From IMG/VR virus record IMGVR_UViG_3300042302_000394, positions 143,814-207,813 of that record: a DNA stretch of 64,000 bases; one strand, written 5' to 3'. A model generated the notes under the pieces. It saw only the letters and a program-made list of their open reading frames with translations, ran no database searches and was not told the DNA's origin. Made by a program: the position numbers and the translations under genes. Shown here piece after piece: positions 8,601 to 48,689 of the stretch; within the stretch, counting starts at the first letter, position 1, and each line of letters opens with the position of its first letter.

Positions 8601-8980
8601 TGCATCCACAATACTCGCATTTTAGCTTTACTGATAATCCTGTCGTATAGATTCATAGACATGAATGGTACACTGCGATTATCGTTTAATCTCGGATAAT
8701 CTTTCGGATCAGTGAATGGAATAATTGTGCGACTGCTTATAACAATATCAAACTCGTGATTGTTAGCTAGATCTGTAAGTGGCCTATAAGTTACTGTGTC
8801 GTACTTGCCAGGTACTGCATGATCAATGTTACAGTTATTGAACACTGTAACATCAAATCCAATTTGTGCGAGTTCCCTACTCATTAGGATAACAGCACTT
8901 TCGCTGCCTCCTAGTCCTTGTTTGAATACCGTAGTTCCGTCGTATGGGATGCCGATAATATCTATAATAGCTAGCTTCAT
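5612..8980 (-). CDS. Four-domain enzyme: GT4-like (GT-B), GT2, second GT-A domain and FkbM-family methyltransferase
   Basis: GLGGSE and PETYGISSMES (GT4); VVVSTFYN...LVDDASTD...LDGDD (GT2); IAIPT...VDSD...GCGFGC (GT-A); YDIGAC and IKMDVQGAE (FkbM). Confidence 0.9.
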   Translation of the reverse strand: MKLAIIDIIGIPYDGTTVFKQGLGGSESAVILMSRELAQIGFDVTVFNNCNIDHAVPGKYDTVTYRPLTDLANNHEFDIVISSRTIIPFTDPKDYPRLNDNRSVPFMSMNLYDRIISKAKMRVLWMHDTFCLGDNLIEELAVADRITDIFTLSDFHLTYVTNCHHGRRRNFEVLKRKMFITRNGVRIYNREVDIKAKDKNLFVYNASVTKGMIPLVKMIWPHVKRHIPEAKLKVIGGYYRFSTNAEPDQQEKDWREMAADPQLAAQGIEFTGVIPQKEIADILTTANFMLYPAAFPETYGISSMESLCYNTPIITCRFGALEEIAVAGACYLIDYAIEPNGLFPDISVPTQVEQFVKTTVEAYRNPYLHQQKQYYCNIVKDIAGWDSVALQWKQHFYKKTGHYLSSSDYRAVSKINHRLHKIYNRKFHNTVELEDYKPGTEQPIVVVSTFYNCKNYIARCINSIATQDYDNYRCILVDDASTDNTLEALYTALSAYPAHIRAKFEVIENQNNVGAVKNQIDTFRSLQDPNAIVMILDGDDSLVNDNTVFSYYNNVYDGTTEFTYGSCWSMVDNIPLISQPYPEHVKNSKEYRNHHFNWILPYTHLRTFKQQLIDGLDDSLFQDDTGAWYKAGGDGSIFYALIENADPSKVKCLQDIVYNYNDVNPLNDYKVNAIEQNVAAKSIIKKMNPSKKKILIAIPTARNIEPETFKSIYDLIIPEGYEATFQYFYGYNIDQVRNLIADWVVKGFDYLFSVDSDISFPPNTLSKLLSHDKDVVSGLYIQRKPGLHILEIYEHNQNGGVSNMPYEKLKGRPLVEIAGCGFGCALVKAEVMCEIGYPQFKYYSAIDHRNTVSEDVDFCRKARDKGFKIWADPSVLCSHTGSFTFNVDNAITAAPDVTPFNIQDRLRELGSQRLIPRNHVDYLAKLKNEGFEPKVIYDIGACVLHWTNEAQRIWDRAKYVVFEAMDSSEFLYKERNLQYHMGVLSDQSGKEVDFYQNDVHPGGNSYYKENEEVNPETVNYFNETHRRRLKTVTLDAVRRLKNFPPPDMIKMDVQGAELDVLKGAVETLSTVKHVILELQVVEYNKGAPLKDDVIAYMDTQGFDCLGIFSNNGPDGDYHFVRR

Positions 8981-22593: not shown

Positions 22594-25500
22594 CTAAACA
22601 ATGTAGCCTGCATCTAAGGCAGTAATGCCCACATGATTTGAGTCCGGAGTCCCGCCATCGTAATTACCGGATGCGCCGCTGCCACCCGATATAGTAACTA
22701 CGACGGCTCCTGTGCCACTTGACACAGCAGACACTCCGTCCCCTAAGAATGTGATACTTGTAACGGTGTTAGTTATAGTAGTTGTTTGATCGACAATTTT
22801 AATAGAAGATCCTGATCCGGCGCTACCAGTGTAACCAACAGCAGCATATTCACCCGGGATACCTTGGCTACCAGTGTATCCTAGATCGCCCTTACTTCCG
22901 GTAAATCCAGTTTCACCTTGACTACCGGTAAATCCAGATCCTTGACTGCCGGTGTATCCAATACTGCCAATAAATCCAACTGATCCCACAAATCCAGTTT
23001 CACCTTGACTACCTGTGAATCCGGTTCCTTGACTGCCGGTGTATCCAACTGATCCCACAAATCCAGTTTCACCTTGACTACCTGTAAATCCAGCTCCTTG
23101 GCTACCAGTAAATCCAATACTGCCAGTGTATCCAACTGATCCCACAAATCCAGATTCGCCTCGACTACCTGTAAATCCAACTCCTTGACTACCTGTGTAA
23201 CCTAAATCGCCGGCAATACCCTGACTACCAGTGAAACCTGTAATGCCTTGACTACCTGTAAATCCAATACTGCCTGTATAACCTTTACTACCCGTAAAGC
23301 CCTTGCCGCCGGCAACAGGTGTAAACACAACAATTAAATTAAACGTTGCTGATGCTGTTTGTGGAACTGTGTCTTGCACTGTCACAGTAAAAGCAGCAGA
23401 ATTCGTCAGTACAGTAGGAATACCAGTGATAAATCCTGTAGCAGTGTTGAAACTTAGACCTGCAGGAAGATTAGGACTGATAGAATAAGTAACTGCACCA
23501 AAGCCCCCGGACACGATCACTGGCTGAAATTCTGTTTCAGCGTTTAATTCTAAAGCAACATCGCTGTTTTGCGGTGCAGCAACTAACGACGGAGGAACAG
23601 CATCATTTACTACTAAGTTAAAGTTAGCCGACGCAGTTATGCCCACACTGTCCAATGCAGTTACTGTATAAGTTGCTGAGGATTCAGTAGTAGGGGTTCC
23701 TGTAATTTGTCCGCTGGCGGTGTTAAATGTCAATCCGATAGGAAGCGAAGGACTAATGCTATATGTTTTAGATCCAGTGCCGCCTGTAGCAGTGACAGGG
23801 CTGACTGCTGTAATTTGAACATACTCTGTCAATACAATAGTTGGATTATTAACTACGGCAACTAACGGTTGTGCGATTACAGATAGACTAAAAGTGTTAC
23901 TGCTGGTTTGCGATAAACTATCAGTTACTGTAACAGTAAAATTAGTAGAAGTTAATAGTGCAACAGGTGTTCCTGTTATTCTTCCTGTGCTGCTGGCAAA
24001 TTGTAAACCAGTTGGCAAACTCGGGCTGATAGAAAATACTAGTGTACCATCGCCGCCTGTGGCAGTAACTGGAATAACGGGTGTGATCGTTTGACTTATA
24101 ACTAGCTCAACTGACGCAGTACTCAACACAGTGTTAACTGGCGGAGGATCTATTACAGTTAACAAGAATGTGGAAGAATTTGAAGACCCTACACTGTCAG
24201 ACACAATAACAGTAAAAGATGTAGCTGTCAACAAAGAATTAGGTTTACCGCCAACGAGTCCAGTGTTGACATTTAATGTCATTGTTGCAGGTAATGAAGG
24301 GCTTATGCTGTAAACCAAAGGAGCAATACCTCCAGCGCCGTTCACTGGTTTAAATGCTGTTGTTTCTTTTGTTCTTGTTGCAGTAGTTGAAGCAATCACC
24401 GTTGTTGCAGTAACAGGTGGATTGTTCAACGTTAAATTAAATTGTTTACTACTGACTTGTGCAATAGAATCATTTGCCGTAATAGTATAAGTTTGGTTAA
24501 CTAATACTGTGGCAACACCGCTGATTCTACCGTTGCCACTGTTAAAACTTAATCCTGCGGGCAAACTTGGGCTAATAGCAAAACTTATTGAACCAAAGCC
24601 GCCGGATGCGCTTACCGGGACTATGCTGATTGTGTCGGTTACTCTGTTAAATGTAGCAGACGATATAACCAAAGTGGTAGTTAATGGTGGCGGCTCATTT
24701 ACTGTTATTTTAAATGTGTTGCTGGCTGTTTGACTTAAACTGTCTGTAACAGTAACTGTATAAGTTGTTTCTGTTGATACAACTGTAGGGGTTCCAGTGA
24801 TCTGTCCAGTTGAAGTGCTAAATGCTAGCCCTGCAGACAAATTTGGTGCTACGCCGTAAGAATAAATTAAAGACCCGCCTGTAGCAGTCACTGGTGTAAA
24901 TGCTGAAATTGGTACAGTTCTAATCAGTGTCGAACCTGCAACAGATTGTTGTGCTTGTAATGGAGGCGTTTCAACTGTTAAACTAAAACTCTCGCTAGCA
25001 GACTGTGTAGCCTGATCTGAGACTGTTACAGTATGATTGGTAGCAGTACGGAAAATAGTAGCGGTGCCTGATACCTGTCCAGTTGCTGCGTTAAAATTTA
25101 AACCTGTAGGGAGTGCTGGATTAATTGCAAATGTCAGTGTACCAAATCCGCCAGTTGCAGTTATTGGAATAAAAGGAGTGTCTGCTAGATTTTGAACCAG
25201 TGTCTTAGTACCAATACTGGAAATTATCAATATAGGTGCAGGGTCTACTTTAAGACTAAATGTTTTGCTGCTAGTCTGTGGGGTACTATTACTGTCAGTT
25301 ACTGTAACAGTGTTGTTGGTGTTAGCACTTACAACTGTAGAAGATCCTGTTATTTGTCCAGTCGCAGTATTAAATGACAATCCTGAGGGCAAGCTAGGAC
25401 TAATTGCAAATGTCAGTGTACCTTCGCCACCACTTGCAGTTACCGGTGTAAAGGGAGCACTAACTTGCGAATTCTGAATCAATGTTCTAGAAGAAATCGC

Positions 25501-27216
25501 CAGTGTCGTTGATAATACAGGTGGGCCAACTAGAATAGTAAACTGTTTTGATGTAGTTTGTGTTGCTTGATCCGTTATGGTAACTGTATACTGCGTCTGA
25601 GTAGAAGTAACAGTAGGACGACCAGATATTTGACCAGTTGTAGTACTGAATGTTAATCCAGCAGGTAGTGCCGGACTAATTGCATAAGATAAAGTTAAAT
25701 ACCCACCGCTAGCAGATACTGGAGTAAATGCCGTAATGGTAGTATTTTTAATGAATGTACTAGTTGCAACTAGTAGTGTTGAATTAAGAGCAGGTAATGC
25801 TTCAACTGTTAAACTAAAAGTTTTGCTGCTAACTTGTGAAGGACTACTAGAGTCAGTAACTGATACAGTGTAAGTCGAAGCTGCAATGGCTTCAGTGGCC
25901 GTGCCCGATACTACCCCAGTTGATGTGTTAAAACTTAACCCAGCAGGCAATGCTGGACTAATTGAAAATGCTAAAGGCGTTATACCACCGCTAGCAGTTA
26001 CTGGAGTAAATGCTGTGAACGCAATAGTTCTAATTAGAGTTCTACTAGAAACATTTTGTACAGTAATTAGCGCCGGAGGAAGTATTTCTAAACTAAAAGT
26101 CTTACTGCTAGTAGCACCAGAACTGTCGCTAACAGTAATAACAAAATTATTCTGTGCAAAAGATACAGATGGTGTTCCTGAAATAAATCCTGTTGCAGTA
26201 TTAAATGTTAGTCCTGCAGGTAATGCAGGATTGATAGAATATGTTAAAGTTCCAATTCCGCCTGTACCATTAACTGGTTTAAATGCGGTAATAGATAAAT
26301 TTTGTGTAAGTGTTCTACTTGCCGTGTCTAGTGTAGAACCCAATTGGGTTGCTCCTGCGGCAACAGCTAATGTAAATGTTGCACTGCCTGTTTGACCGCT
26401 AGCATCTGTAAAAGTCATTACATATGAAGTAGATGGCGATGCTACTGTAGGAGTTCCGGCGATAACAATATCAAGATAGTTGTACCAGTAATTAACTGTG
26501 TCCGCTGCTGTTATCGATTTAACAGTAGCATCAGTGATACTAACAGTTGCACCTGTATTCCACGCAACCTGTCCTATCGGTGATGTTCCTCCGCTTAGAC
26601 TAGGATTAGCATTATATCTAAGCGTGATTGTGGATACTGTAACAGCAGTACATTCCCATATTCCGTTGTAGCTGGTTTTAGTTTGTCCTCTTACTGCGTA
26701 AAAACTTCCAGCAACAGGAGTTTGTCCGTTAGAAGTATATTGATATGTTACAGACCACGAAGTTCCAGATCCTGATATAGTAGGAGCAGTGCCAGAGACA
26801 TTTAGATCAACTCTAGTTTTTTTAATAGCAAGTCCAGCAGGCAGTGCAGGATTGATACTAACATTTAAAATTTCAGTTGGTATCGCACTTCCGCCGTACA
26901 CACTTACCGGATTAAAGGTGGCCAGTGTGCCTTGTGTAAAATTCAATGTAGGAACTAAGGTCGTTGCTACAATATTAGGCGGAGTAGGAGGTGAAGCTAG
27001 ACCGGGAAATCTAGAACCTGTTACGCCCAGGTAAGGTTTTGTTAAATCGTAGTTGCCCAGTGTAATCTTACCAGCAGACAACCCAGTACCTAATACGCCC
27101 GTTCTGGCAGCGCCGTTTTGGTTGATATAAGCGTCTTGAGCACCGAAGTAATTGTCACCTGCTACAGTAGCGGGTGCAGGTTGAGCTGTTGGATAGGGAA
27201 AGTAATAAATGGTCAC
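22594..27216 (-). CDS. Large virion protein with tandem putative-Ig (He_PIG-like) repeats and a collagen-like tail
   Basis: More than 10 repeats of [YF]SISP.LP.GL.FNT.TG.I.GTPT; GFTGSQ tract; GTG start 7 nt after TAAATA. Confidence 0.85.
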   Translation of the reverse strand: MTIYYFPYPTAQPAPATVAGDNYFGAQDAYINQNGAARTGVLGTGLSAGKITLGNYDLTKPYLGVTGSRFPGLASPPTPPNIVATTLVPTLNFTQGTLATFNPVSVYGGSAIPTEILNVSINPALPAGLAIKKTRVDLNVSGTAPTISGSGTSWSVTYQYTSNGQTPVAGSFYAVRGQTKTSYNGIWECTAVTVSTITLRYNANPSLSGGTSPIGQVAWNTGATVSITDATVKSITAADTVNYWYNYLDIVIAGTPTVASPSTSYVMTFTDASGQTGSATFTLAVAAGATQLGSTLDTASRTLTQNLSITAFKPVNGTGGIGTLTYSINPALPAGLTFNTATGFISGTPSVSFAQNNFVITVSDSSGATSSKTFSLEILPPALITVQNVSSRTLIRTIAFTAFTPVTASGGITPLAFSISPALPAGLSFNTSTGVVSGTATEAIAASTYTVSVTDSSSPSQVSSKTFSLTVEALPALNSTLLVATSTFIKNTTITAFTPVSASGGYLTLSYAISPALPAGLTFSTTTGQISGRPTVTSTQTQYTVTITDQATQTTSKQFTILVGPPVLSTTLAISSRTLIQNSQVSAPFTPVTASGGEGTLTFAISPSLPSGLSFNTATGQITGSSTVVSANTNNTVTVTDSNSTPQTSSKTFSLKVDPAPILIISSIGTKTLVQNLADTPFIPITATGGFGTLTFAINPALPTGLNFNAATGQVSGTATIFRTATNHTVTVSDQATQSASESFSLTVETPPLQAQQSVAGSTLIRTVPISAFTPVTATGGSLIYSYGVAPNLSAGLAFSTSTGQITGTPTVVSTETTYTVTVTDSLSQTASNTFKITVNEPPPLTTTLVISSATFNRVTDTISIVPVSASGGFGSISFAISPSLPAGLSFNSGNGRISGVATVLVNQTYTITANDSIAQVSSKQFNLTLNNPPVTATTVIASTTATRTKETTAFKPVNGAGGIAPLVYSISPSLPATMTLNVNTGLVGGKPNSLLTATSFTVIVSDSVGSSNSSTFLLTVIDPPPVNTVLSTASVELVISQTITPVIPVTATGGDGTLVFSISPSLPTGLQFASSTGRITGTPVALLTSTNFTVTVTDSLSQTSSNTFSLSVIAQPLVAVVNNPTIVLTEYVQITAVSPVTATGGTGSKTYSISPSLPIGLTFNTASGQITGTPTTESSATYTVTALDSVGITASANFNLVVNDAVPPSLVAAPQNSDVALELNAETEFQPVIVSGGFGAVTYSISPNLPAGLSFNTATGFITGIPTVLTNSAAFTVTVQDTVPQTASATFNLIVVFTPVAGGKGFTGSKGYTGSIGFTGSQGITGFTGSQGIAGDLGYTGSQGVGFTGSRGESGFVGSVGYTGSIGFTGSQGAGFTGSQGETGFVGSVGYTGSQGTGFTGSQGETGFVGSVGFIGSIGYTGSQGSGFTGSQGETGFTGSKGDLGYTGSQGIPGEYAAVGYTGSAGSGSSIKIVDQTTTITNTVTSITFLGDGVSAVSSGTGAVVVTISGGSGASGNYDGGTPDSNHVGITALDAGYIV

Positions 27217-27239: not shown

Positions 27240-28931
27240 TTATGCTCTCACTGTCAAGTCTAATATGTCAAAATATCCTAATCCAGTATCGTAACAAATG
27301 AATATAGCAGCATTGACATCATCATAGTAATAGTCACCGGGTTTAAGATCGCTTAGGCTTAATCCGTTTGCAGCATCTGCATTGGTATACATTCTAGGTG
27401 CAGCTGACAGTTGTCCCGAGCCATCTGGAAATACTAGGGTGTAACCCGATTGTATAGTAATAGAACCGATACCGTCTGAAACAAGACCTTCTACGGCACT
27501 ACCTGTATAGCCAATGTCCCCTTGACTACCTGTATAACCATCACGTCCTATTACACCGTCAACACCTGCACTACCTGTGAATCCAATACTACCTGTATAA
27601 CCTAGATCACCGGCGCTGCCTACATCACCTTTTTCTCCTTGCGAACCTACATAACCTACGTTGCCTCTCGAACCTACATAGCCCACATCGCCTTGTGAAC
27701 CTACATAGCCCACATCGCCTTTTTCTCCCTGCGAACCTACATAACCTACGTTGCCTCTCGAACCTACATAGCCCACATCGCCTTGTGAACCAGTATATCC
27801 ATCTATGCCTTGGCTACCAGTAAAACCAATACTTCCAGTATACCCTAACTCTCCCTGCGGTCCTACAATATTTCCAACATCTAACCAATCATCACCGACC
27901 CAAATGTTTAAGTGGCCATTATCAGATGTAATGTATCCATCACCGATATTTCCTAGATAGGACCCGGGGAGAGTTGCGTAGGTAGAAGTACTACCTAAAA
28001 TCTGTACACTAGTACCGTCAGTACCTCGACTACCCACATAGCCCACATTTCCCTGACTACCTGTAAATCCTAATTCTCCTTGTGAACCCGAGTATCCAAT
28101 GCTTCCAGTAAAACCTAGATCACCTTGACTACCTGTAAATCCTAATTCACCTTGTGATCCGGTAAAACCTTGTGATCCAGTATATCCACGACTTCCAGTA
28201 AATCCTATATCGCCTTGACTACCAGTAAATCCAGTATCACCAACTGATCCATCAACACCGGCACTTCCAGTAAATCCTATATCGCCTTGACTACCAGTAA
28301 ATCCAGTATCACCAACTGATCCATCAACACCGGCACTTCCAGTAAATCCAGTATTGCCTTGACTACCAGTAAATCCAGTATCACCAACTGATCCATCAAC
28401 ACCGGCACTTCCAGTAAATCCAGTATTGCCTTGACTACCAGTAAATCCAGTATCACCAACTGATCCAGTATAACCTACATTCCCTTGACTACCTGTAAAA
28501 CCTTGACTGCCTGTGTAGCCCGTATATCCGAGATTTCCCTGAGATCCAGTGTACCCGGTATCTCCACGCGAGCCTGTATAGCCAATATTACCCTGCGAAC
28601 CTGTATAGCCTGTAGGGCCTTGTATTTTTCCTACATCAACCCAAACTGTCCCGTCCCATACCCATAAATTTCCAGTGGCTTCTTCAATAAATCCATCACC
28701 GGAATCGCCTGCGTAACTAGTTTCCAATTGAGTACTATTAGATACGCTGCCTGTAATAGTAACGCCACTACCCGAACCATTAAATTGCAGTAATCTGCCG
28801 CCAGGGGTAACGCCGTCACCTATGCGTAGGTCCCCTAATGTCTCATCATACCAAATTGTGCCCTTGTCCCCTACCCAGTCGTAAGAATTGACAGTTATTA
28901 TTCTACCGGCTTGTATTTTATAGATTGGCAT
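27240..28931 (-). CDS. Collagen-like fibre protein with G[YF]TGSQ repeats
   Basis: [12 protein letters not shown]-terminus and long [17 protein letters not shown] tracts with exact DNA tandem duplications. Confidence 0.85.
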
Positions 28932-32170: not shown

Positions 32171-34870
32171 TTAGACTATGTTGATAACATTACCCATTAC
32201 GCCATGGATAGTGCATTGATAATACAGTGTAGATGGTGCATTCATTGGCACAGTAAATGTCTGTGTGCCTGCTTGACTGCCTGAAACGCCGTCAGTATAA
32301 GCTGCGCCGCCGTCACTTACTCTAATAGCAAAGGGATGACTGCCACCCGTAGTGTTGATAAAAGTATAGGTAAATCCTCTGTATAGATATAGCACAGGAT
32401 CATTAGTGTTGCCTGCAACTACACCGGGTCCGCTGAATACGTAATCACTAGTTCCAGTAGATGATACTGACCACGTAATAGAAGCACTAGGGCCAGTTGG
32501 CCCTGTATCGCCTTGTGGTCCTTGTGGTCCAGTTACTCCTTGTGGACCAGTTGGACCTACGTTTCCTTGAACGCCTTGTGAACCACTTGGCCCAGTTGGC
32601 CCTGATGGTCCAATAAATCCTATGCCGTTTGCTCCACTAGGTCCTGATGGCCCGGTTGGCCCGGTGGGTCCTGTGGCCCCGTCGACTCCTGTGGGTCCCG
32701 ATGGCCCAGTAGGACCCGAAGGTCCTGCTACTGCGCTTGCCGGTCCTGCTGGTCCAGTGGCGCCTGATGGGCCAGTAGGTCCTGTATCACCAGATGGTCC
32801 TTGTGGACCAGTTGGGCCTGCACCTGTAGGTCCTGTATCGCCTGGAATTCCTTGAGCACCTGATGGTCCAGTTGGACCAGTTGGACCTACAGCTCCTTGA
32901 ACACCCTGTGGGCCAGTTGGACCCACGTCTCCTTGAACGCCTTGTGGACCTTGCGGGCCACCGGATGGGCCAGTTGGACCCACGTCTCCTTGAACGCCTT
33001 GTGGACCAGCAGGGCCAGTTGCACCAGTAGGCCCCTGTGGACCTACGTCTCCTTGAACGCCTTGTGGACCTTGCGGGCCACCGGATGGGCCAGTTGGACC
33101 CACGTCTCCTTGAACGCCTTGTGGACCAGCAGGGCCAGTTGCACCTACCGATCCTTGACCACCGGCAGGGCCAGTTGGACCCACGTCTCCTTGAACGCCT
33201 TGTGGACCAGCAGGACCAGTTGGACCTACAGCTCCTTGACCACCAGCAGGTCCTTGTGGGCCAGTTAGTCCTTGTGATCCGGTACTTGCAACTACAATAC
33301 CATTTACACTTATATCACCTTCGAGTGTAACTTGCAAAGGAATACCGCCAAAATATACGGTGCTAGTCCCAACATACAAACTACGCCATTGTTTATCAGC
33401 ACTACCTAAATCAAATCTTATATCATCTGTTGGAATTAAACTGTTTTGCACTTGTAAGTCTGTACCTGTTGCCAGTGACCCTATCTTTGTAAACTTAAAT
33501 GTTCCTGTTGATGAAAGCTCCGATGAAACTATGCTAGTAGTAGTAGTTCCGGAGTTAGTAAAAAACATAAACTTGGCAGTGGGGAAAGTCCCTGTGTTTT
33601 CAACTCGAACGTGTATTCTTGCGGGAGCCATGAATTGTGTTGGAGTTCGAGTTGAAAACACAAGCTCTGCAATATTATCATTTTCTAACAAAGGTGTTGG
33701 TGCAGTTGCTGTTCCTCTAGTTCTAACCCATCTAAAATCTAATGCATCTGGTTGATCAAAGTGTTGTGAAAATGACCAACCTGCGGCACCTGGTATAAAA
33801 AGTTCTCTAGACCAAGCAACACTTGTACCAGTATTAGAGGTAGCACCACCAATAAAAATTACCTGACTATCGAAATTGTAAGACATTGCTAAACTAGGAG
33901 AAATTTCTGTATTATTAGTTGTTCCGTAGAGTGCAAATCTTCCAAATTGACCAGGATTTACTCTTCCTTGTCTAATACCATCTATACTAATTCCGGTTGT
34001 TGGATCTACAGATACTTGGTAATTGTCAAAGTACATGGATGTAGATGCTACATGTATCGTTCCACTGTTTAGGTATAGATTGCCTTGTCCAGTTAGTTCT
34101 AACTTTTTAACCCAGGTAGTTTCCTGTCCGGTGGTAGGGACTGTATAGGTTTCAAATGAATTGTCAGCAACACCGATACCGAATAATGTCTGTGAATCAC
34201 CCGGTCCCGTATCCCCTAGAAATAAAACTTGATTTATGTTTGCATCTTCATTTACTAAAACTGTTGATTGCTCGTATGCCGAGGCGAATCCGTATGCTCG
34301 ATATTCACCTCCGGTAAATGGAGTTGATTCTAAGTGACGTATTCTACTATAATTGTCACTATCATAACCTCCAACAACAATAGCTTGACGAATGGTAAGT
34401 GTGTTAACATAGACGGTATTCCATCTACGTAGGTCAGATCCTAAGTTAAATTGGTTACTAGCATTGGGTAATACATTACCGGAAGTTACTAAGTTTCCAA
34501 AGCTATTTAGACTAGTAACAAAAGATCCGTTAACCAGAGACGACGTGGTTGAAAATCCGCCCCCGGTACCGGCAGGGCCAGTTGGGCCAGTCTCACCTTG
34601 TGGCCCAGCAGGGCCGGTAGGACCGGCAGCTACAGTAAATTGAACAATATTTAATGCATCATTATATACAGCAGTCATGCCACTATGACTACTATGAACT
34701 AATAGCGTAGCACCAGCGTCTGCTACTGCTTCTGTAAAATCAGTACCAGTTGTTCCTAGCAGTGTGGCAATTTCTGTAAAATTTTGATTTACTTTGATAA
34801 ATGCAGATCGTATGCTGTCACCGTCGCCTGAGTTTGCATTAGAACCTGTATTGATAACTTGAATGGTCAT
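32171..34870 (-). CDS. Tail fibre: baseplate-attachment N-terminus, GPT/GPQ collagen tract, C-terminal cupredoxin-like domain
   Basis: [26 protein letters not shown] (T4 gp9/gp10-like); long G-P-T/G-P-Q/G-P-S tract; HPF...[10 protein letters not shown]. Confidence 0.85.
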
Positions 34871-40329: not shown

Positions 40330-40438
40330 ACTTTAATTTCAATATTTTTTTCAAGACTAGGAACCCTAAATATAGCATCTATTTACTGAGAGATCAAATG
40401 TTGTTAATATAACAGTATTTTATTTAATAAATACCGCT

Positions 40439-42403
40439 ATGCCTGATAGATCTATACAATTACTAACTGATGTTTTTCCAAATTCAACTACAAATCATGG
40501 TAATTTGAACAATCCCGATATAATACTAGTCCAGGCACCTGGATGGGGAGTGCAAACAGCTCCGCTTTCTTTAGCATCACTTTCAGCCTATGTTCGGCAG
40601 AAAGGATACAAGATTTTACCATTAGATTTAAATGTTGAATTTTTTGCTATTAGACCTGAGAAATTTTCCATAATGTGGGACATAGATCAATCTCAGTGGT
40701 TTTGGGAATCTAAAGACTGCGTTAATGACCTGTTAACCGAATACAAAAAAGAAATTGATGACTTTGTCGAGTTAGTGGTGTCGACTAATACACCATTAGT
40801 TGGATTTAGTTTATACAACACTTCAATGCATACTTCGATGCATCTTATCAAACTGCTCAAAGCACGTAAGCCTGAGCTAAAGATTATTGTCGGTGGTCCT
40901 CATGCCCACCGATATCTAGCTGGTAATGTTTTGGCAAAAAATCCGTTAATAGATGCAGTCGCCCAGGCTGAGGGAGAAGAAACATTAGTAGACATAATTG
41001 AGCGTGTTCGAAAAAATCAATCATTGCTCGATTGCCCTGGATTGTTAGTGTTTAAAGACGGAGCAGTACATGCTACTCCAACAAGGCCAATGATTCCAAA
41101 AATCGACACTCTTCCGATACCCCACTACAGTGATTTTTCATTAGCTCCTTACCTATCCCCAACACGATTACCAATGGCGTCTAGTCGAGGGTGTCCTAAT
41201 AAATGTATATTCTGTAATGAGCAACCTTATTGGGAATCATATCGATTTCGGTCTGCAGAAAGCATGATTGAAGAAGTTAAGTACCAATTAAAATTATATC
41301 CTGAAATTGACTTTATTGACTTTCAAGATAGTTTATGTAACGGGAAGATAAGCGCAATTGAAAAGTTTGCCGAATACCTCATTGAAAATAAAATTAAAAT
41401 ACAATGGGCCGGACAGGCAGTTATTAGAAAAGAAATGACCGAAGAACTGATGATAAAATTAAAACAGTCCGGATGTGTGGTCATGGCCTACGGATTAGAA
41501 ACTCCAAACCCTACACTTATGAGGAGTGTAGGAAAGTTATTATCAAAAGGTGCCGATATTGATAAAATTGCTGAATCTCATGCAAGGACCGGACTTAATG
41601 CAGTTTACAATGTCATGTTTGGGTTACCGGGAGAAACTGAAGAAGATTCATTAATGGTCTTAGAGTTTTTAAGACGTAATTCAAAAAATAAATTATATGT
41701 AAATCCCAGTGCAGCATTTTGCGGATTTGCTAACGGAACTCCTGGATGGGAGAACGCAGAAAAATTCGGTATTGACAAAACACTCGGCGGAACTTTTTGG
41801 AAAAGTGTAGATGGTAATAACACATTCCTAGTTCGATTAAAAAGATTTGAAGATTTTTGTCGATTAGTTTCCGACTTAGGTATAAAAACCACTTATCCGT
41901 CGACATATCTTCTCAATAGAAATCAAGTCATTGCCCAATATTATATTGCAATAGGTCAACCAGAAAAAGCAATATACTATTACACAGAATGGGTTAAAGA
42001 TCATCCCGAAGATCAAATAGCTAAAAAGTTTTTATTCGAATATTCAGGTTTCTTAAAAAGTACCCCAAGTTCAAATGTTTATGCAATTAGCCGGCATTCG
42101 GATGAGAATTGGTTAAATGGTGTTGCTAGAAATTGGGGGCCTGCAATATTATTTTCACATGTTCCTTACATTTTAGAAGAATTAACAGTTGGTAAAATTG
42201 TACAGTTTTCAGATCTTCAAACAAGAAAAATAATTAGAGTTGAAGATAATTTTGAAAATGATTGTATTGTAATACACCTCGACGGCACTCATTTAGATGG
42301 AGATCAAGTTGGTTGGCCAAAACTAATAACTGTTTTAGAGGAGCCTAGCAAAGTTATCCCTATTAAGATAGTTAATTACACAGAAATAGATTTTAAAAAA
42401 TGA
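40439..42403 (+). CDS. Cobalamin-binding radical SAM enzyme (class B methyltransferase-like) with C-terminal extension
   Basis: PLSLASL...D.N, VGGPH, EGEE, SRGCPNKCIFC, YGLET, MFGLPGET. Confidence 0.9.
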   Translation: MPDRSIQLLTDVFPNSTTNHGNLNNPDIILVQAPGWGVQTAPLSLASLSAYVRQKGYKILPLDLNVEFFAIRPEKFSIMWDIDQSQWFWESKDCVNDLLTEYKKEIDDFVELVVSTNTPLVGFSLYNTSMHTSMHLIKLLKARKPELKIIVGGPHAHRYLAGNVLAKNPLIDAVAQAEGEETLVDIIERVRKNQSLLDCPGLLVFKDGAVHATPTRPMIPKIDTLPIPHYSDFSLAPYLSPTRLPMASSRGCPNKCIFCNEQPYWESYRFRSAESMIEEVKYQLKLYPEIDFIDFQDSLCNGKISAIEKFAEYLIENKIKIQWAGQAVIRKEMTEELMIKLKQSGCVVMAYGLETPNPTLMRSVGKLLSKGADIDKIAESHARTGLNAVYNVMFGLPGETEEDSLMVLEFLRRNSKNKLYVNPSAAFCGFANGTPGWENAEKFGIDKTLGGTFWKSVDGNNTFLVRLKRFEDFCRLVSDLGIKTTYPSTYLLNRNQVIAQYYIAIGQPEKAIYYYTEWVKDHPEDQIAKKFLFEYSGFLKSTPSSNVYAISRHSDENWLNGVARNWGPAILFSHVPYILEELTVGKIVQFSDLQTRKIIRVEDNFENDCIVIHLDGTHLDGDQVGWPKLITVLEEPSKVIPIKIVNYTEIDFKK

Positions 42404-43182
42404 AAAGTTTTTTAAATCAATATAATGTTATATCTGAAGATATACCAGGGTCCTTACAATTTCCCAGTGCATTAGTATGGGACTCGTTATTAGGTTATCA
42501 AACCGAAAATAAAGTTGTGCGTAATTTTTTAGAAATAGGTGTATTACATGGAAAGTCTGCAATGCTAAGTGGGCTATATGCACAGGCCAACAACACACAG
42601 CAGGTGATTGTAGATCCCGGTGAATGGATGGACACAACTTATTCAAATTTACTATCAAAGATTGAGGGATTAAATCTAAGATTAATAAATGATTATTCTA
42701 ACAGTTTGGTGCATTTTCATTATTCTATTTTTCAAGAACATTCTCGCGATTATTCATGGTTTCATATTGATGGCGATCATAGTTATGCACAATGCTATAA
42801 AGATTTAATTTTAGCTGATCATTTTTTGTCTGACTATGGAGTTGTTATTGTTGATGATTTCTTTTCAACCATGTTTCCTCAGGTTACAGCTAGCACTTTT
42901 TCATATTTAGAAAAACATCCATTAAATTTAAAAATGTTTTTAGTTGGTCAATGTAATAAAGCATATCTATGCAGACCGCCAGCATTTGATTTTTATAAAA
43001 CGTTTTGCATAGATGTATTATCTAAAGATATGAAAGACCGAAAATATCCTGTAACTATAACTAAAACAACTTATCCTCAGGATTTTGATTGTTACGGGTA
43101 TCAACCCATAGGATGGACTGATGACAGAATGGAGTTTCGTGGTCCGGACTGGGATAGAACTAATTTTATAAAATATACCTAA
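42400..43182 (+). CDS. Class I SAM methyltransferase (Methyltransf_24-like)
   Basis: LEIGVLHGKS...HIDGDHSY...D...L...GV..VDD. Confidence 0.85.
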   Translation: MKSFLNQYNVISEDIPGSLQFPSALVWDSLLGYQTENKVVRNFLEIGVLHGKSAMLSGLYAQANNTQQVIVDPGEWMDTTYSNLLSKIEGLNLRLINDYSNSLVHFHYSIFQEHSRDYSWFHIDGDHSYAQCYKDLILADHFLSDYGVVIVDDFFSTMFPQVTASTFSYLEKHPLNLKMFLVGQCNKAYLCRPPAFDFYKTFCIDVLSKDMKDRKYPVTITKTTYPQDFDCYGYQPIGWTDDRMEFRGPDWDRTNFIKYT

Positions 43183-43185
43183 CAG

Positions 43186-44421
43186 TTAATTTTTCCACCA
43201 CGGCAAATATTTTTCTGTATTGTGATTTCGATAAGCATCCATCTTTTTTATTATCGAAACACTGTTTTTAAAATTTATATCTGACTCAGGTGTTCCGATT
43301 AAAAATGTAATCATTGCACTCAATATGTTAGCCTTTTCTTTAACTGCATCTTTTTCAAGTAGTTCTCTATTGTTTTCAAACCAGGTTGCAATTTCTTGAT
43401 ACACTGTATTTTTATAAGCTGTTGGTAAATTACTCGGGGATGCATAGCTTGGATCGTAGATATAATTTATGTGAGGAAAGTTTAAAATATTCTTTCCTTC
43501 CAACCTCACAATATAATCTAACAATTCTGTAAATTTATGTGTATTAAAAATAGAAAACACAGTGTGAAACTCGATACCAATATTTTCGTTTTCATTCGAA
43601 TATTGAACTATGCTATCAATATTATCTTTAACAATGTTCCATTTTCCAGGATATCTAATATATTCGTACATATCAGCAACAGCATCAATACTTACTTTAA
43701 TAGTCATAGTCTTAAAATGGCTCCAGATGTCAAACCATTTTGACGGTGTCACAGTTAAATTTGTATGTATAGATAAGTCAACCTGTTTAGATAAACCTGA
43801 ACTAATTAGTTCTTTACAAAATGTATAAAAATCGTTGTTGATTAATGGTTCACCACCGGTTACTAATATCTGCACTAATCCGTCAGTCTTTACTAGGTCA
43901 AGGATATGTTTAATTTGATCATAGTTCCATTGAGCTTTATAATCACTTTCTTTTTCACCCCATGGTTTAATGTTGAGGAATTTAAATTCTTTTATTAGTT
44001 GATCGCTAGCTCCCGGGGTACACATCTTGCATTGTAGATTACACTTATTCGACCAACTTAAATCTAAGTAATTTACATCAACAGATTCTAACTTGCCCGT
44101 ATGCATTTCAGTGTTTGTTATAATATCTTCAATCGGCCATCTCTTTACAAACCAATTTCTAACACTTTCACCCCCATTGTCCTCAACATTATAACAATGC
44201 TGGCACTCGGCCACCCGCTCGCCGTCTATCATTTTCTTTCTTATATTTTTTAATTGATCAATATTGTAAAATTCAATCAAACTTGTTATCTCATTTATTT
44301 TTACAAACTTGCCATCTTTCTTTAATCTTCCTGCATTAGTAGAATTACAACAAAGACGCATATTGCCATCAGTGTGTGTAGAAAAATGATTCCATGCTAA
44401 CGGGCAATATGTCTTAGTCAT
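43186..44421 (-). CDS. Radical SAM protein with N-terminal SPASM/twitch-like Cys cluster
   Basis: CPLAW...CC...CQHCY; NKCNLQCKMC; TGGEP. Confidence 0.9.
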   Translation of the reverse strand: MTKTYCPLAWNHFSTHTDGNMRLCCNSTNAGRLKKDGKFVKINEITSLIEFYNIDQLKNIRKKMIDGERVAECQHCYNVEDNGGESVRNWFVKRWPIEDIITNTEMHTGKLESVDVNYLDLSWSNKCNLQCKMCTPGASDQLIKEFKFLNIKPWGEKESDYKAQWNYDQIKHILDLVKTDGLVQILVTGGEPLINNDFYTFCKELISSGLSKQVDLSIHTNLTVTPSKWFDIWSHFKTMTIKVSIDAVADMYEYIRYPGKWNIVKDNIDSIVQYSNENENIGIEFHTVFSIFNTHKFTELLDYIVRLEGKNILNFPHINYIYDPSYASPSNLPTAYKNTVYQEIATWFENNRELLEKDAVKEKANILSAMITFLIGTPESDINFKNSVSIIKKMDAYRNHNTEKYLPWWKN

Positions 44422-45763
44422 GTTTAAAAGCATCTTTCAAGTCTGGAATATAATCGCCGATTGAAATTCCTCTATGGTCATCAAGTATTTTAATTCTATG
44501 TTTGAATACCTTAAACAGTTTCGGATTGTCAGGCTTGGTTAATTCATTTAATAACAAGTGTATCTTTCCATCTAGTCCGGGAAAATCTTTAATGACTTGA
44601 CTATTTTCTAGATATGCTGTTAATCTCTGTGTAGCTAAATCTTTCAGAGACTGTGGTAACATTGATATTTGTTGTTCCATCGGAAACATAATTAAGTTGA
44701 TGTTATATGGCCACTCTTTAAAGTATGGATGCACTTTGGCCTGTTCTTCTATAAAATATAATAGGCTATCTAAGTTAACAATGTTCAATGAGCTAACGGT
44801 GATATTATTCAATATCTTAACATTGCTGTGTTTCATATAACTCTTTGCTTCAATGTAATTCTTTGATACCTGGCGCCATTTACTAGGATATCTAGCATAA
44901 TCGTTGACTTTATCAAACCCGTCAATACTGGCAATGAGTTCAAACTTTTTAAACTTAGGCATTAACTCTAAAAAGTTTTTATTTAGGTTTGTAAAGTTAC
45001 TGGACAAAAATACAGTAATATTTTTAGCATGATCATTGTCTACAACATATTGCAGTGCCTTTAACACAAATGGCATAATTGTAGGTTCACCACCGGCAAA
45101 ACTTAATACTTCTAGTCCAGGTGCTAATTTTGTAAAACTTTCCCATATTTCTTCATTATCAGACCAATCGGGATGTTCGACATCTTTCCATGTTTTATTA
45201 TGTTCAGTGATTCCAAACACACTGGAAATTTCAATAAATCTTCCATCTAATACTTTGATGCCACCAAATTTATTATTAAGTTCACCTAACTCTTTAGCAA
45301 TCTGACTACTGTCGTAACTGTTGCACATGACACATTTAAGGTTGCACAAATTACTAGGCTTTAATTCTAAATATGTTGGTTGGTGTAACACTTCGTAACT
45401 GTTGTTTATGCTGTTGGCAACTATCTCTAATGTTTTTCGATTATTTTTATAATCTTCAATTGACCGTGTACGCATACTAACGTCGCCGTCTCGAATGCAA
45501 CGCCTGCAAGCATCAGGAGTATCTCCTGTATGTAATTTTTTTCTTAAATCAACAAGGTGTTCGCTGTTCCACGCATCACTAAAATTATCCCCGGATAAAA
45601 TGCTAATGATATCTCCGTTCGGGTGTGTCATTGTTCCTACATAATTACAACACGGTTTAAGGTGGCCAGCGGGATTAGAACTTAGTTGTGTAAAAGGATA
45701 AAAACAAAATGTCTCACTTTCAATAATTTCTGTTCTTAATTGATCAATCTTGTCCATATTCAT
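44414..45763 (-). CDS. Radical SAM protein with N-terminal SPASM/twitch-like Cys cluster
   Basis: CFYPF...PCC...CRRC; NLCNLKCVMC; AGGEP. Confidence 0.9.
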   Translation of the reverse strand: MNMDKIDQLRTEIIESETFCFYPFTQLSSNPAGHLKPCCNYVGTMTHPNGDIISILSGDNFSDAWNSEHLVDLRKKLHTGDTPDACRRCIRDGDVSMRTRSIEDYKNNRKTLEIVANSINNSYEVLHQPTYLELKPSNLCNLKCVMCNSYDSSQIAKELGELNNKFGGIKVLDGRFIEISSVFGITEHNKTWKDVEHPDWSDNEEIWESFTKLAPGLEVLSFAGGEPTIMPFVLKALQYVVDNDHAKNITVFLSSNFTNLNKNFLELMPKFKKFELIASIDGFDKVNDYARYPSKWRQVSKNYIEAKSYMKHSNVKILNNITVSSLNIVNLDSLLYFIEEQAKVHPYFKEWPYNINLIMFPMEQQISMLPQSLKDLATQRLTAYLENSQVIKDFPGLDGKIHLLLNELTKPDNPKLFKVFKHRIKILDDHRGISIGDYIPDLKDAFKHD

Positions 45764-48689
45764 TATTCCTTGTTGCTTCTAACACTAATTTCATTTCTGG
45801 TATGATTTCATAAGTATTCTCACCTCTTAACTTATCCAATTGTTCCGTCACTGTTACAAATTTCTTTGCTGATGTTAAATCAAATGGTTTTTTTAATTCA
45901 TGTATGATATGTGTTAAAAGATGATCTATGCTTGTATTATATGTTTCGTTGTGCTCTTTGACAAAAGTTTCTAATTTAATTACAGTCTCTGCACGATAAT
46001 CATCGGGTAGAATACTAACATGATAATGTGAAGGATGTTCTAACAAATTGATGAAGAAATTATTGTAATTAATAAATTTGGTTTTAGGATGTTGACGTAT
46101 AACTCCTATTGAAATCAAATGTTTAATAATTTCAGGAAATCTGCCAACATTCCAAGCACCTACAGTAATACCCGGGCGTATGATAGCATTATCTAATGTC
46201 ATCAATTCTTTTAGATTTGACTCAACCTTAGACCATACAGTGCCGGCTCGAATGAGTTCTGCACGTTCTCCAACTTCATCGATACTGGGCCATATTTCTA
46301 ATTTGCCAAAGTTCCATCGCCGCCAGTAGTCAATAACATTTTTCTTATTATAAGATAACACTGATGCATTTGTGTTATATGATAGTTTAACATCAAATCG
46401 TTGTTTTTCTACCAACATTTCTAAAATTTGCCAGTGTTCAGGCATGAGTAGAGGTTCGCCTCCAGCAAAGTAAATTCTTTCCACATGGTTAATTTGATCT
46501 TTTAGAAAATCAAAGTTATTCTTATCATCTACTGATTCGATGCTCCATATTTTTTCTTGATCAGTGAGGCCTAATTTTTTAGCATCCGGCACCCATGCTG
46601 AACTGTAACGTGGTCCGCAACTACGACATTTAAAATTGCAAAGATTACTAAAACGGAAATCCCAATACTTCAACTCCATAGTAGTGCATGTTCCGTCTGC
46701 TAGTGTAATTTCTGGAATTTTTTTTACTACCTCTGGAAAGTCTCTATTGTGATAGAAACGACCACTTTCACCAGTGACCCGTTCTCTATCAAAACATTTA
46801 CGGCATATTTCGGGCTCTTTGCCCCCTATCATATCTTTTCTTAAAGATTTCATATTGCCGCTGTTCCAAATTTCTTCAATGCTCTGATGTGTTAGATCAC
46901 CAGCAAAATAATTATGTACAGAGGTTAGGCAACACGGAATTACTTTTCCACTAGGTTCAAATGCAAGATGCATCCAGGGCACTGCACATATTGTGGTTGT
47001 ATTTGTTGCAACTGCAACTACATCTTCTTTTTTGACAATTTTAATAGGTTTGTAATCGAAGGCAGTTATTTTTTTTGAGTTGAACATTGTGAGTAACCAG
47101 GACCTGTTATTTATTTGTTGTAATGTTGGTGTATTTTTATTTGCATCAAAGAACTCTTTAGCAGAATGTACAGCAGATAATGCATAATTACCGAACGGCC
47201 TATCTACTCCCAGAGTCTCCCATGCTGCCAATCTATCAATAGCTTCAGCATTATCGGGATCTTGTGCAATGGTATTGCATAACTTAATTGTTTCCCTAAA
47301 TGCACTTCGCCATGTGGCAAACTCGTCTGTGTTAAATGTTGTAATGTTACTGACTTTATCGAAGACTTTTAATTTAGGAACAATAGTCGTCAGTAGGTCT
47401 AATGTTTTCCAAACTTTGATTTTGCCAAATGCCCGCTTAGGGAATAATTTAACGCCACCGTAACCATATTCTAAATCATTAACAGGATTCTTACTGTGCC
47501 AGACGTATGTACAGTCTCTATCAAATATCTCTGGTTGGTAGTCGAACTGCCAGTCATCGACTAAGTAAGCATCACCGTCGACTACATAGAACATGTCAGT
47601 CTTGGATAACTTAGCCGCTGCCTTATGTGCCTCAAAGATACCAGTAACACCATCCACACGTTTGGCATGTGGTGCTTTTTCTAAAACACGCTGCCAATTC
47701 TCTTCTGCATTAGATTCATGGTAACTAATAAAGATTACATCCAGTGTTTCGGCAATCAGAGGAGTAACTGTTCCTATTTCTTTAACACCCACAATCTCTG
47801 CACTGGGAGTAATTTTCAAAGCCCAAATCTTCTCCCCGTTTATTTCTTTGTCTAGATACCATATATGTTCATAGGCTAGATCGTGCCAAGGAATGTCGTA
47901 ATCTAAATCAAAACGCATTTCTGGTAGGCTAGGATTTTGTTCAATTTTAAACTCAGGACTAACTGTGCCTAACCATTCCCATTTAGAAGTTTTTTTACGT
48001 TTAGGTTCAAACTTAATCAACCAAGTACCTGGTTTTGGACTGTAGTTAGGATCCAGCTCAAGTGCAGTAACGTAATCCAGAAACCAAAATGGCGGATAAC
48101 ATTCGTTGACATCGATGAGTAGTTTAGGAAGATCAGGATTCCATGTAACTCGCATTTCAGGCATAACGTATCCCATGTCTTTCTCGCCTTTAACGTTGGC
48201 GCCAGGCACCTCACAAGTAAATGCCCATATTTTATCTTCTAAAGGATTGACTCTAGGATCAATGTACCAAACTAACGTATAGTCAGCATCGTCTTGATTA
48301 TATACATAACTTTCTATAGGATTAAATTCAAATGTAATAGAACTTGCTATTGCAGAATTCTTTTTCCAGATAGGCGTTTTTGCCCACATGTGATTCTTTG
48401 GTACTTCTATTTCATGTGTTTCATATCCAGCATATGGGTGCCACCCATCTTTAAACAGTTTGGCTACCCACTCACCTTTGTATGTCCAAACTAGACATTT
48501 TCTTGTTTTAGGCACATCATTTACAAAGTTCAAGACACTAGAATGTCTTGCATAAGGATTTATCACTAAGAATTCAGTATCGCCTTCACCTAAGTTGTAT
48601 AATTGTTGGTCATAATAAAACTCATCCCCTCCCCAGGGGATTTCTTTGATTAGGTCTGTATTGATTTTGGGGTATTGATCTAGAAGCAT
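45744..48689 (-). CDS. Fusion of aromatic-rich repeats, a glycosyltransferase-like (DxD) domain and a twitch radical SAM domain
   Basis: DVIFISY.E..AEENW...AHKAAA...YVVDGD...YGYGGVKL; then CAVPW...PCC...CRKC, NLCNFKCRSC, AGGEP. Confidence 0.85.
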   Translation of the reverse strand: MLLDQYPKINTDLIKEIPWGGDEFYYDQQLYNLGEGDTEFLVINPYARHSSVLNFVNDVPKTRKCLVWTYKGEWVAKLFKDGWHPYAGYETHEIEVPKNHMWAKTPIWKKNSAIASSITFEFNPIESYVYNQDDADYTLVWYIDPRVNPLEDKIWAFTCEVPGANVKGEKDMGYVMPEMRVTWNPDLPKLLIDVNECYPPFWFLDYVTALELDPNYSPKPGTWLIKFEPKRKKTSKWEWLGTVSPEFKIEQNPSLPEMRFDLDYDIPWHDLAYEHIWYLDKEINGEKIWALKITPSAEIVGVKEIGTVTPLIAETLDVIFISYHESNAEENWQRVLEKAPHAKRVDGVTGIFEAHKAAAKLSKTDMFYVVDGDAYLVDDWQFDYQPEIFDRDCTYVWHSKNPVNDLEYGYGGVKLFPKRAFGKIKVWKTLDLLTTIVPKLKVFDKVSNITTFNTDEFATWRSAFRETIKLCNTIAQDPDNAEAIDRLAAWETLGVDRPFGNYALSAVHSAKEFFDANKNTPTLQQINNRSWLLTMFNSKKITAFDYKPIKIVKKEDVVAVATNTTTICAVPWMHLAFEPSGKVIPCCLTSVHNYFAGDLTHQSIEEIWNSGNMKSLRKDMIGGKEPEICRKCFDRERVTGESGRFYHNRDFPEVVKKIPEITLADGTCTTMELKYWDFRFSNLCNFKCRSCGPRYSSAWVPDAKKLGLTDQEKIWSIESVDDKNNFDFLKDQINHVERIYFAGGEPLLMPEHWQILEMLVEKQRFDVKLSYNTNASVLSYNKKNVIDYWRRWNFGKLEIWPSIDEVGERAELIRAGTVWSKVESNLKELMTLDNAIIRPGITVGAWNVGRFPEIIKHLISIGVIRQHPKTKFINYNNFFINLLEHPSHYHVSILPDDYRAETVIKLETFVKEHNETYNTSIDHLLTHIIHELKKPFDLTSAKKFVTVTEQLDKLRGENTYEIIPEMKLVLEATRNNEYGQD

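Follow-up and report, generated by a model that had tools for sequence, protein, structure and literature searches.

A jumbo-phage gene joining a predicted glycosyltransferase-fold module to a radical SAM enzyme, with a likely link to sugar chemistry

Background

Virus-encoded glycosyltransferases of the GT-A type that glycosylate virion proteins have been described in several systems; these include A64R of PBCV-1, the glycosylation machinery of giant viruses (PMC9614988), and the virion glycosylation of mycobacteriophages (Freeman et al. 2023, as cited in PMC12801897). In contrast, NF033640 (N_Twi_rSAM, twitch domain-containing radical SAM protein) is a large radical SAM subfamily with no known substrate and, apparently, no characterized member. 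In this study, a GT-A-fold domain and a domain of this subfamily were found in a single open reading frame (ORF) of a jumbo phage, located in a window of 64,000 nucleotides (positions 143,814 to 207,813 of IMG/VR record IMGVR_UViG_3300042302_000394). Literature searches for this fusion, or for this radical SAM subfamily in phages, found nothing relevant.

Domain Architecture of the Fusion Protein

The ORF at 45744-48689 (-) is a single open frame with an ATG start, encoding a protein of 981 aa (P0001). The initial annotation, which had proposed a GT-like domain fused to a complete twitch radical SAM enzyme behind about three aromatic repeats, was confirmed. The same 981 residues, with no mismatch and no stop, are encoded in four other IMG/VR metagenome assemblies, and full-length homologous fusions exist at 69%, 54%, and 32% identity (P0006, P0065, and P0020 with P0040). 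A sequencing error that removed a stop is therefore excluded, and an assembly artefact or a frameshift joining two genes is very improbable, although the two parts are separate genes in most relatives. No match to the ORF was found by blastn against cultured phages.

The protein begins with a head domain of 110 aa (aa 1-110; 48360-48689, -), which is conserved across the family, with nearly invariant W19, Y26, D27, W74, K77, and W83, and which is not itself a repeat. No family or fold match was obtained for this domain, and in the zero-repeat members it sits directly next to the GT-A domain. It is followed by three Trp/Tyr/Pro-rich repeats of ~68 aa, detected with an HMM grown by jackhmmer on repeats of other proteins and seeded with unit C of P0001. 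These are repeat 1 (aa 111-179; 48153-48359, -; E 3.2e-20), repeat 2 (aa 181-247; 47949-48149, -; E 2.8e-18), and repeat 3 (aa 249-312; 47754-47945, -; E 2e-32), while nothing else in the protein scores better than E 0.06. The units are divergent (23-29% identical), as a plain BLASTP self-comparison of aa 1-320 showed no internal repeat, but their consensus, NPxLP...DLxYExVWxLDP...WAxK...GxKxMGxxxP, matches the pattern proposed in the initial annotation. A search of the PDB with the repeat unit gave only chance hits or nothing, and ESM Atlas searches with head plus repeats gave only a chance-level lead (TAGT, 0.82).

The middle domain (aa 313-545, 233 aa; 47055-47753, -) agrees with the position of about 47090-47745 initially assigned to it. 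Its AF2 model has a pLDDT of 91.8 and shows a GT-A fold. Foldseek returned hits of probability 1.00 to SunS, WrtF, PcManGT, RmlT, GalNAc-T2, and A64R, the best being the glycocin S-glycosyltransferases SunS (E 3e-5) and ThuS, and all hits with E below 1e-3 were glycosyltransferases. Structural comparison (VIA) gave Z-scores of 8-11.1, the highest with B4GALNT1 (11.1). A DxD-type motif, DGD (D371-G372-D373; 47571-47579, -), lies at the end of the fourth strand of the domain (strand E54-59 of the model) and is invariant in two alignments of 32 and 55 sequences. However, no curated GT family profile was matched above its threshold: P0001 has no Pfam, NCBIfam, or PHROG hit in aa 1-564, and Glycos_transf_2 (PF00535) is the only Pfam family recurring sub-threshold, in 5 of 32 members (best E 0.012). 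PDB profile and sequence searches identified no relative of the domain, ESM Atlas searches returned only unannotated viral clusters, and hhalign against the GT2-containing protein of the same window showed no relation (probability 0.4%), although with a single-sequence template this comparison is uninformative.

The GT-A fold is shared with nucleotidyltransferases, and IspD, MobA, and other enzymes of this type score nearly as high (Z 9-10 over about 130-140 residues). The domain could thus activate a sugar phosphate or another phosphate compound to an NDP or CDP derivative, which the radical SAM enzymes would then tailor. This alternative was considered unlikely, as the full-length alignments (about 220 residues) are to GT2 synthases. 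In addition, the invariant DGD lies at the GT-A DxD position, and the first strand is followed by FISYxE rather than a Gly-rich loop.

The C-terminal domain (aa 565-967; 45789-46997, -) is a complete N-terminal-twitch radical SAM domain, matching NF033640 with 352.6 bits against a cut-off of 170 (profile positions 2-395 of 398). Pfam SPASM (568-632, 50.7 bits) and Radical_SAM (680-790) were also matched. The domain contains a CX3CX2C motif (CNFKCRSC, aa 684-691; 46617-46640, -) and an N-terminal Cys cluster at positions 568, 586, 587, 629, and 632. PDB searches with this domain gave only chance hits or nothing.

Genomic Context and the Variable Island

The fusion ORF is followed by two further N-twitch radical SAM genes, P0002 (44414-45763, -; 449 aa; NF033640 305.7 bits), whose start overlaps the end of the fusion ORF by 20 nt, and P0003 (43186-44433, -; 415 aa; 324.2 bits). 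Convergent with this operon is a gene encoding a B12-binding radical SAM protein (40439-42403, +; 654 aa; Pfam B12-binding plus Radical_SAM), whose best NCBIfam hits are C-/P-methyltransferase families, all below cut-off; a further gene encodes a Methyltransf_24 SAM methyltransferase (42400-43182, +; 260 aa). These genes form part of a variable, low-GC island (40350-48689). In comparison with the near-identical phage L003, DNA identity falls from 99-100% to 70-84% at the start codon of the ORF, homology ends at 47015, the GT-A/radical SAM junction, and it resumes at 40349. The different cargo of L003 includes an NDP-sugar dehydrogenase-like gene (E 1.3e-42), an RfaE-II-like nucleotidyltransferase plus cupin, and a carbamoyltransferase-like gene, whereas the island of the window itself has no recognizable NDP-sugar synthesis gene.

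Upstream of the ORF lies a conserved gene, P0004 (48729-50258, -; 509 aa), whose relatives precede the module in all five syntenic loci. It is a candidate virion protein or acceptor by inference only; tblastn found no match among cultured phages, and ESM Atlas gave only a weak, chance-level Ig-like lead (0.80). The neighborhood is rich in collagen-like, Ig-like, and lectin-like fibre genes, and holds another GT1-GT2-FkbM protein.

Distribution of the Module and Its Association with Radical SAM Genes

The head-repeat-GT-A module belongs to a large, apparently virus-restricted, unannotated family of over 1,100 protein clusters and at least 571 IMG/VR loci, carrying 0-14 repeats (length = 325 + 68.5n). 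Fusion is the exception, observed in 7 of 240 sampled proteins, and the module is normally a separate gene opening an operon of radical SAM genes. Of 46 non-redundant IMG/VR loci, 40 have a radical SAM gene downstream or fused and 34 have it adjacent or fused, whereas none of 34 has one upstream; the mean is 2.7 per locus, and 96% are co-directional. However, most of the 80 fetched loci belong to one syntenic phage lineage, so part of the adjacency may be inherited rather than selected, and six of the 46 islands lack radical SAM genes and carry other cargo. No significant correlation was found between the number of repeats and the number of downstream radical SAM genes (Spearman 0.27, p 0.12, 34 loci). 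In a FastTree phylogeny of 121 rows, fusions sit at four or more places in the GT-A tree and involve two radical SAM classes.

A similar pairing was observed in cultured phages. Ralstonia phage RsoM2USA has the order gp350 (GT-A), gp349 (N-twitch radical SAM), and gp348 (GT-A), of which gp350 is a paralogue of the domain while gp347 is not, and the same trio was found in L090. In Vibrio phage K566, N-twitch radical SAMs are interleaved with two GT8 genes and a GT4-like gene.

Possible Function of the Cassette

Taken together, the recurrent fusion, the near-obligate operon, and the swapped cargo that includes NDP-sugar enzymes support, by inference, the initial proposal that the fusion links this radical SAM family to glycan chemistry. 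The explanation favored here, with moderate confidence, is that the ORF is the first gene of a variable sugar-tailoring cassette. The middle domain would be a metal-dependent, DxD-type GT-A nucleotide-sugar transferase of a new family, while the C-terminal domain would use a 5'-deoxyadenosyl radical, with an auxiliary cluster, to abstract a hydrogen from the same sugar or nucleotide-sugar. The downstream radical SAM paralogues, the B12-radical SAM protein, and the methyltransferase would add further tailoring steps (epimerization, deoxygenation or dehydration, C- or O-methylation), and the head and repeats would be a non-catalytic targeting or spacer part. The most likely acceptor is a virion surface or fibre protein, although this is a guess based on gene order.

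Alternatively, the twitch/SPASM-type radical SAMs and the B12-radical SAM could modify amino-acid residues of a protein substrate such as the P0004-like protein (crosslinks, epimerization, C-methylation), with the GT-A domain acting as a protein S-/O-glycosyltransferase of the SunS kind. The Foldseek hits to SunS and ThuS and the conserved gene preceding the module are in line with this RiPP-like reading, as are secondary NCBIfam hits to peptide maturases: DynA, PapB, and the sulfatase maturase for P0002, and ApyD and rSAM_ocin_1 for the B12 enzyme. However, all of these hits lie far below their family cut-offs, and no short precursor peptide or RRE-type domain was seen, albeit without a dedicated search. 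The NDP-sugar enzymes of sister islands and the gene arrangement of K566 also argue against this possibility, which appears unlikely.

A role in nucleotide or DNA modification, with the GT-A domain glycosylating modified phage DNA as an anti-restriction device, seems less likely still. The next-best radical SAM matches act on nucleotides (viperin, MoaA, QueE, and NrdG), the island is swapped between near-identical phages, as anti-defence loci often are, and there is the chance-level TAGT lead noted above. Nevertheless, those hits are all below cut-off, the locus lies among fibre genes, and a stalk of 0-14 repeats is unexplained for a DNA enzyme. No thymidylate-synthase-like hydroxymethylase (PF00303) was found in the 207,813-bp contig, although this is only about 58% complete, and the NDP-sugar dehydrogenase and carbamoyltransferase genes fit glycan building better.

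More speculatively, jumbo phages of this lineage, and others such as RsoM2USA and K566, may carry a swappable cassette that builds and attaches radically tailored, strain-variable sugars onto virion fibre or Ig-like proteins, as a phage counterpart of O-antigen diversity. Although doubtful at present, this would give NF033640 its first function and would imply new radical SAM carbohydrate reactions. If the product is a virion glycan that varies between otherwise identical phages, it would bear on host range and on immune or defence recognition of phages.

Comparison with Known Systems

PBCV-1 A64R (Foldseek E 7e-4; Z 8.2-9.5) and the other virus-encoded virion glycosylation systems share with this module a DxD GT-A domain located near structural genes, with virus-encoded sugar-nucleotide enzymes present here in sister islands. 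However, there is no sequence-level relation, and the module adds a head and novel repeats and is systematically coupled to arrays of radical SAM enzymes, which those systems do not have. The GT2 family, including SunS/ThuS and the catalytic domains of BcsA (Z 10.0 over 220 residues) and hyaluronan synthase, provides the best structural matches, but identity is 10-13%, and there are no transmembrane or TPR parts. Within NF033640, the C-terminal domain and the two downstream genes are members, one copy being fused here to a GT-A module. The proposed mechanism is by analogy with radical SAM enzymes that probably act on sugars or aminocyclitols with an auxiliary cluster, such as BtrN and AprD4, although their auxiliary domain appears to be C-terminal and no significant match to them was found (AprD4 family only 30 bits, for the B12 enzyme). 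Finally, the replacement of a low-GC cassette of glycan-type genes with sharp boundaries between near-identical genomes resembles what would be expected of bacterial O-antigen and capsule loci, but this cassette lies in a phage genome and its cargo is dominated by radical SAM enzymes rather than by GTs, flippases, and polymerases.

Sequence Features of the Fusion Protein

The window corresponds to bases 143,814-207,813 of a 207,813-bp IMG/VR viral contig that CheckV rates about 58% complete, so it comes from a jumbo-phage-sized genome. ORF 45744..48689 on the minus strand is one open frame of 981 aa (protein P0001) with an ATG start, located 39 nt downstream of the preceding gene. Four other IMG/VR assemblies from different samples encode the same 981 residues with no mismatch and no stop, and the fusion is therefore not a sequencing or assembly error. 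Scans against Pfam, PHROGs, and NCBIfam recognized only the C-terminal part of the protein, whereas residues 1-564 matched nothing in any of the three libraries. NF033640 (N_Twi_rSAM) scored 352.6 bits against a cut-off of 170 over aa 565-967, and Pfam identified SPASM at 568-632 and Radical_SAM at 680-790. The CX3CX2C motif is found at 684-691, and five cysteines (568, 586, 587, 629, and 632) form the N-terminal twitch part.

A BLASTP self-comparison revealed no repeats in the N-terminal region. However, a profile grown on the repeats of other proteins detected exactly three units in P0001, at aa 111-179, 181-247, and 249-312, with E-values of 3e-20, 3e-18, and 2e-32, respectively. An alignment of 38 units gave the consensus NPxLP...DLxYExVWxLDP...WAxK...GxKxMGxxxP, which is the Trp/Tyr/Pro-rich pattern noted in the initial annotation. 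In the AF2 model each unit is a small, mostly beta module, while residues 1-110 constitute a separately conserved head.

A word search with aa 1-565 retrieved 474 protein clusters of 540-1717 aa, and a search with aa 313-545 retrieved 707 clusters of 128-408 aa. Almost all of them are labeled as hypothetical proteins and have no Pfam domain. Mapping of the head, repeat, and middle-domain profiles onto 240 of these proteins showed one architecture, consisting of the head, then n repeats (n = 0 to 14), and then the roughly 228-aa domain at the C-terminus, with protein length equal to 325 + 68.5n (r = 0.998 over 194 proteins). Seven of the 240 have a long C-terminal extension, and in all seven it is a radical SAM domain. 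This domain is of the N-twitch type in the family members P0006, P0065, P0020, and P0040, while in P0005, P0016, and P0072 it is a shorter type whose best, sub-threshold match is viperin-like. In a FastTree of the middle domain these fusions lie at four or more separate places, and P0001 is sister to the fusions of the other radical SAM class, although this is a quick tree with local support values only.

Predicted GT-A Fold of the Middle Domain

An alignment of 32 sequences, 49-68% identical to P0001, showed invariant FISYxE, N331, R344, G350, H355, D371, D373, Y408, GG411-412, K414, D431, S447, R465-E466, and K469. The AF2 model of the domain has a mean pLDDT of 91.8 and a pTM of 0.86. Comparison of this model with the PDB by Foldseek gave 21 hits with E at or below 1e-3, all of them glycosyltransferases, including SunS (3e-5), CgT, ThuS, WrtF, PcManGT, RmlT, GalNAc-T2, PBCV-1 A64R, GtrB, and TarP. 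An independent VIA search gave BcsA at Z 10.0 (220 residues aligned, rmsd 5.1) and GnT-I at 9.2, and with the full-module model B4GALNT1 reached Z 11.1 (140 residues, rmsd 3.2). These Z values are only moderately above the stated background of 7-8 of the tool, and the assignment rests on the uniform fold class of all top hits, the Foldseek probabilities, and the DGD motif at the end of the fourth strand taken together. Against viral models, the best hits after two uncharacterized family members were viral glycosyltransferases, and Glycos_transf_2 was the only Pfam family that recurred, sub-threshold, in 5 of 32 members.

Nucleotidyltransferases of the same fold (IspD and MobA) also lie at Z 9-10, and nucleotidyl transfer by this domain therefore had to be considered as an alternative. 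It is concluded that the domain has the GT-A fold with a DxD-type site and represents a new sequence family. Glycosyl transfer is favored over nucleotidyl transfer, since there is no Gly-rich loop after strand 1 and the DxD is invariant, although the choice between the two activities remains an inference.

Genomic Context and Linkage to Radical SAM Genes

In the window, the ORF is followed, with overlapping or abutting reading frames, by two more NF033640 genes (P0002 and P0003), and facing them are a B12-binding radical SAM gene and a Methyltransf_24 gene. A fourth NF033640 radical SAM gene (178 bits) lies elsewhere in the same contig, at 95136-96008 and outside the window. Four other long contigs are syntenic, with flanking 267-aa and 259-aa genes 55-68% identical to those of the window. 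All of them keep the order of a protein (459-1714 aa with a shared C-terminal part) resembling P0004, the product of the gene preceding the ORF, then the head-repeat-GT-A gene, and then 1-7 radical SAM genes. Notably, the 1714-aa protein of contig L006 (2821-7965, +) joins in one chain segments that are separate genes in the other syntenic phages (a He_PIG protein, a 342-aa protein, and a P0004-like protein), and it also has a Pro-kuma_activ domain.

Among 50 non-redundant loci of the 80 fetched, 46 have at least 3 kb of downstream sequence, of which 40 have a radical SAM gene downstream or fused, and 34 have it within 100 nt or fused. None of the 34 loci with at least 3 kb of upstream sequence has a radical SAM gene upstream. 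The mean is 2.7 radical SAM genes per locus, and 96% are on the same strand. However, these loci are the closest relatives and mostly one lineage, so the counts overstate independence. The six islands without radical SAM genes carry other cargo, namely DctP- and TctC-like binding proteins, an amidohydrolase, a GDSL esterase, and unknowns. For instance, an island without radical SAM genes in locus L049 (7038-10080, +) encodes DctP- and TctC-type solute-binding proteins and an Amidohydro_2 enzyme, which are unusual for a phage. A different cargo type was found in locus L005 (13760-18769, +), where four paralogous unknown genes of 258-296 aa lie downstream of the module and its single radical SAM gene, followed by Methyltransf_23, NTP_transf_3, and a shikimate-dehydrogenase-like gene.

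More distant cases give further support to this linkage. The cultured jumbo phage Ralstonia phage RsoM2USA (record 216629-219688) has gp350 (GT-A family, 148 bits), gp349 (NF033640, 316 bits), and gp348 (GT-A family, 238 bits) in a row, all annotated as hypothetical. The same trio is present in a MAG contig (L090), and two further MAG contigs have N-twitch radical SAMs beside the domain. In Vibrio phage K566 (record 160041-171009), four N-twitch radical SAM genes are interleaved with two GT8 genes (above the Pfam cut-off) and a GT4-like gene, although the GT-A family studied here is absent from this cluster. Only 6 hits were found across genomes of 185,579 prokaryote species, all on MAG contigs, and the GT-A family is therefore essentially viral.

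A Variable Island among Fiber and Surface Genes

The contig L003 is 99-100% identical in DNA to the window from about 52,650 to 48,647, and identity drops to 70-84% exactly at the start of the ORF. The alignment stops at 47,015, which corresponds to aa 558, the GT-A/radical SAM junction, and resumes at 40,349 at 93% identity. In between, L003 carries different cargo, comprising a viperin-like radical SAM domain fused to its module, two N-twitch radical SAMs, an NDP-sugar dehydrogenase-like gene (E 1.3e-42, below the subfamily cut-off), an RfaE-domain-II-like nucleotidyltransferase with a mannose-6-phosphate-isomerase-type cupin, a carbamoyltransferase-like gene, a methyltransferase, and another radical SAM gene. 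The island (window 40350-48689) coincides with the lowest GC of the window, 0.31-0.37 against 0.40-0.49 elsewhere. This is the pattern of a cassette exchanged by recombination, and the sugar-nucleotide genes in the sister cassette are the most direct support for glycan chemistry.

The window also encodes very large fiber-like proteins, including a 1526-aa protein with six Laminin_G_3 domains (9578-14158, -), a 1540-aa protein with 11 He_PIG Ig domains plus collagen repeats (22594-27216, -), and three further collagen-repeat proteins (18007-19986, -; 27240-28931, -; 32171-34870, -), which suggest a phage with many fibers and are possible glycan acceptors. A 747-aa protein (20318-22561, -) has an Mtd_N domain, the N-terminal domain of the major tropism determinant, which hints at a diversity-generating retroelement target or a receptor-binding protein. 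In addition, the window encodes an endolysin, a DNA ligase, and a 1122-aa protein (5612-8980, -) combining GT1 (Glycos_transf_1), GT2 (Glycos_transf_2), and an FkbM-type methyltransferase domain, a second glycan enzyme in the same phage. The island thus lies among fiber and surface genes of a phage that has other glycan enzymes. This setting, together with the constant upstream P0004-like gene, favors a virion protein as the acceptor. However, this is inference only. P0004 has no family match and only a chance-level Ig-like lead.

Proposed Mechanism and Comparison with Known Families

In the mechanism proposed here, the GT-A domain would bind an NDP-sugar through a divalent metal at DGD and transfer the sugar, while the fused and downstream radical SAM enzymes would abstract hydrogen atoms from that sugar, either before or after transfer, to epimerize, deoxygenate, or methylate it. 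The B12 enzyme and the SAM methyltransferase would add methyl groups, and the head and repeats would position the enzyme on its target. Every chemical step in this scheme is inferred. Besides nucleotidyl transfer by the GT-A-fold domain, alternative explanations are protein (RiPP-like) maturation and nucleotide or DNA modification. With regard to the latter, no ThyA-like gene was found in the contig, but the genome is incomplete.

The initial annotation had described a glycosyltransferase-like domain fused to a radical SAM enzyme behind tandem aromatic repeats, which is confirmed, and had proposed that the fusion links this radical SAM family to glycan chemistry, which is supported as an inference. 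While the GT-A fold and the NF033640 radical SAM family are already known, the protein described here contains a new GT-A family that carries a variable repeat stalk and is systematically coupled, sometimes fused, to N-terminal-twitch radical SAM enzymes in a swappable phage island.
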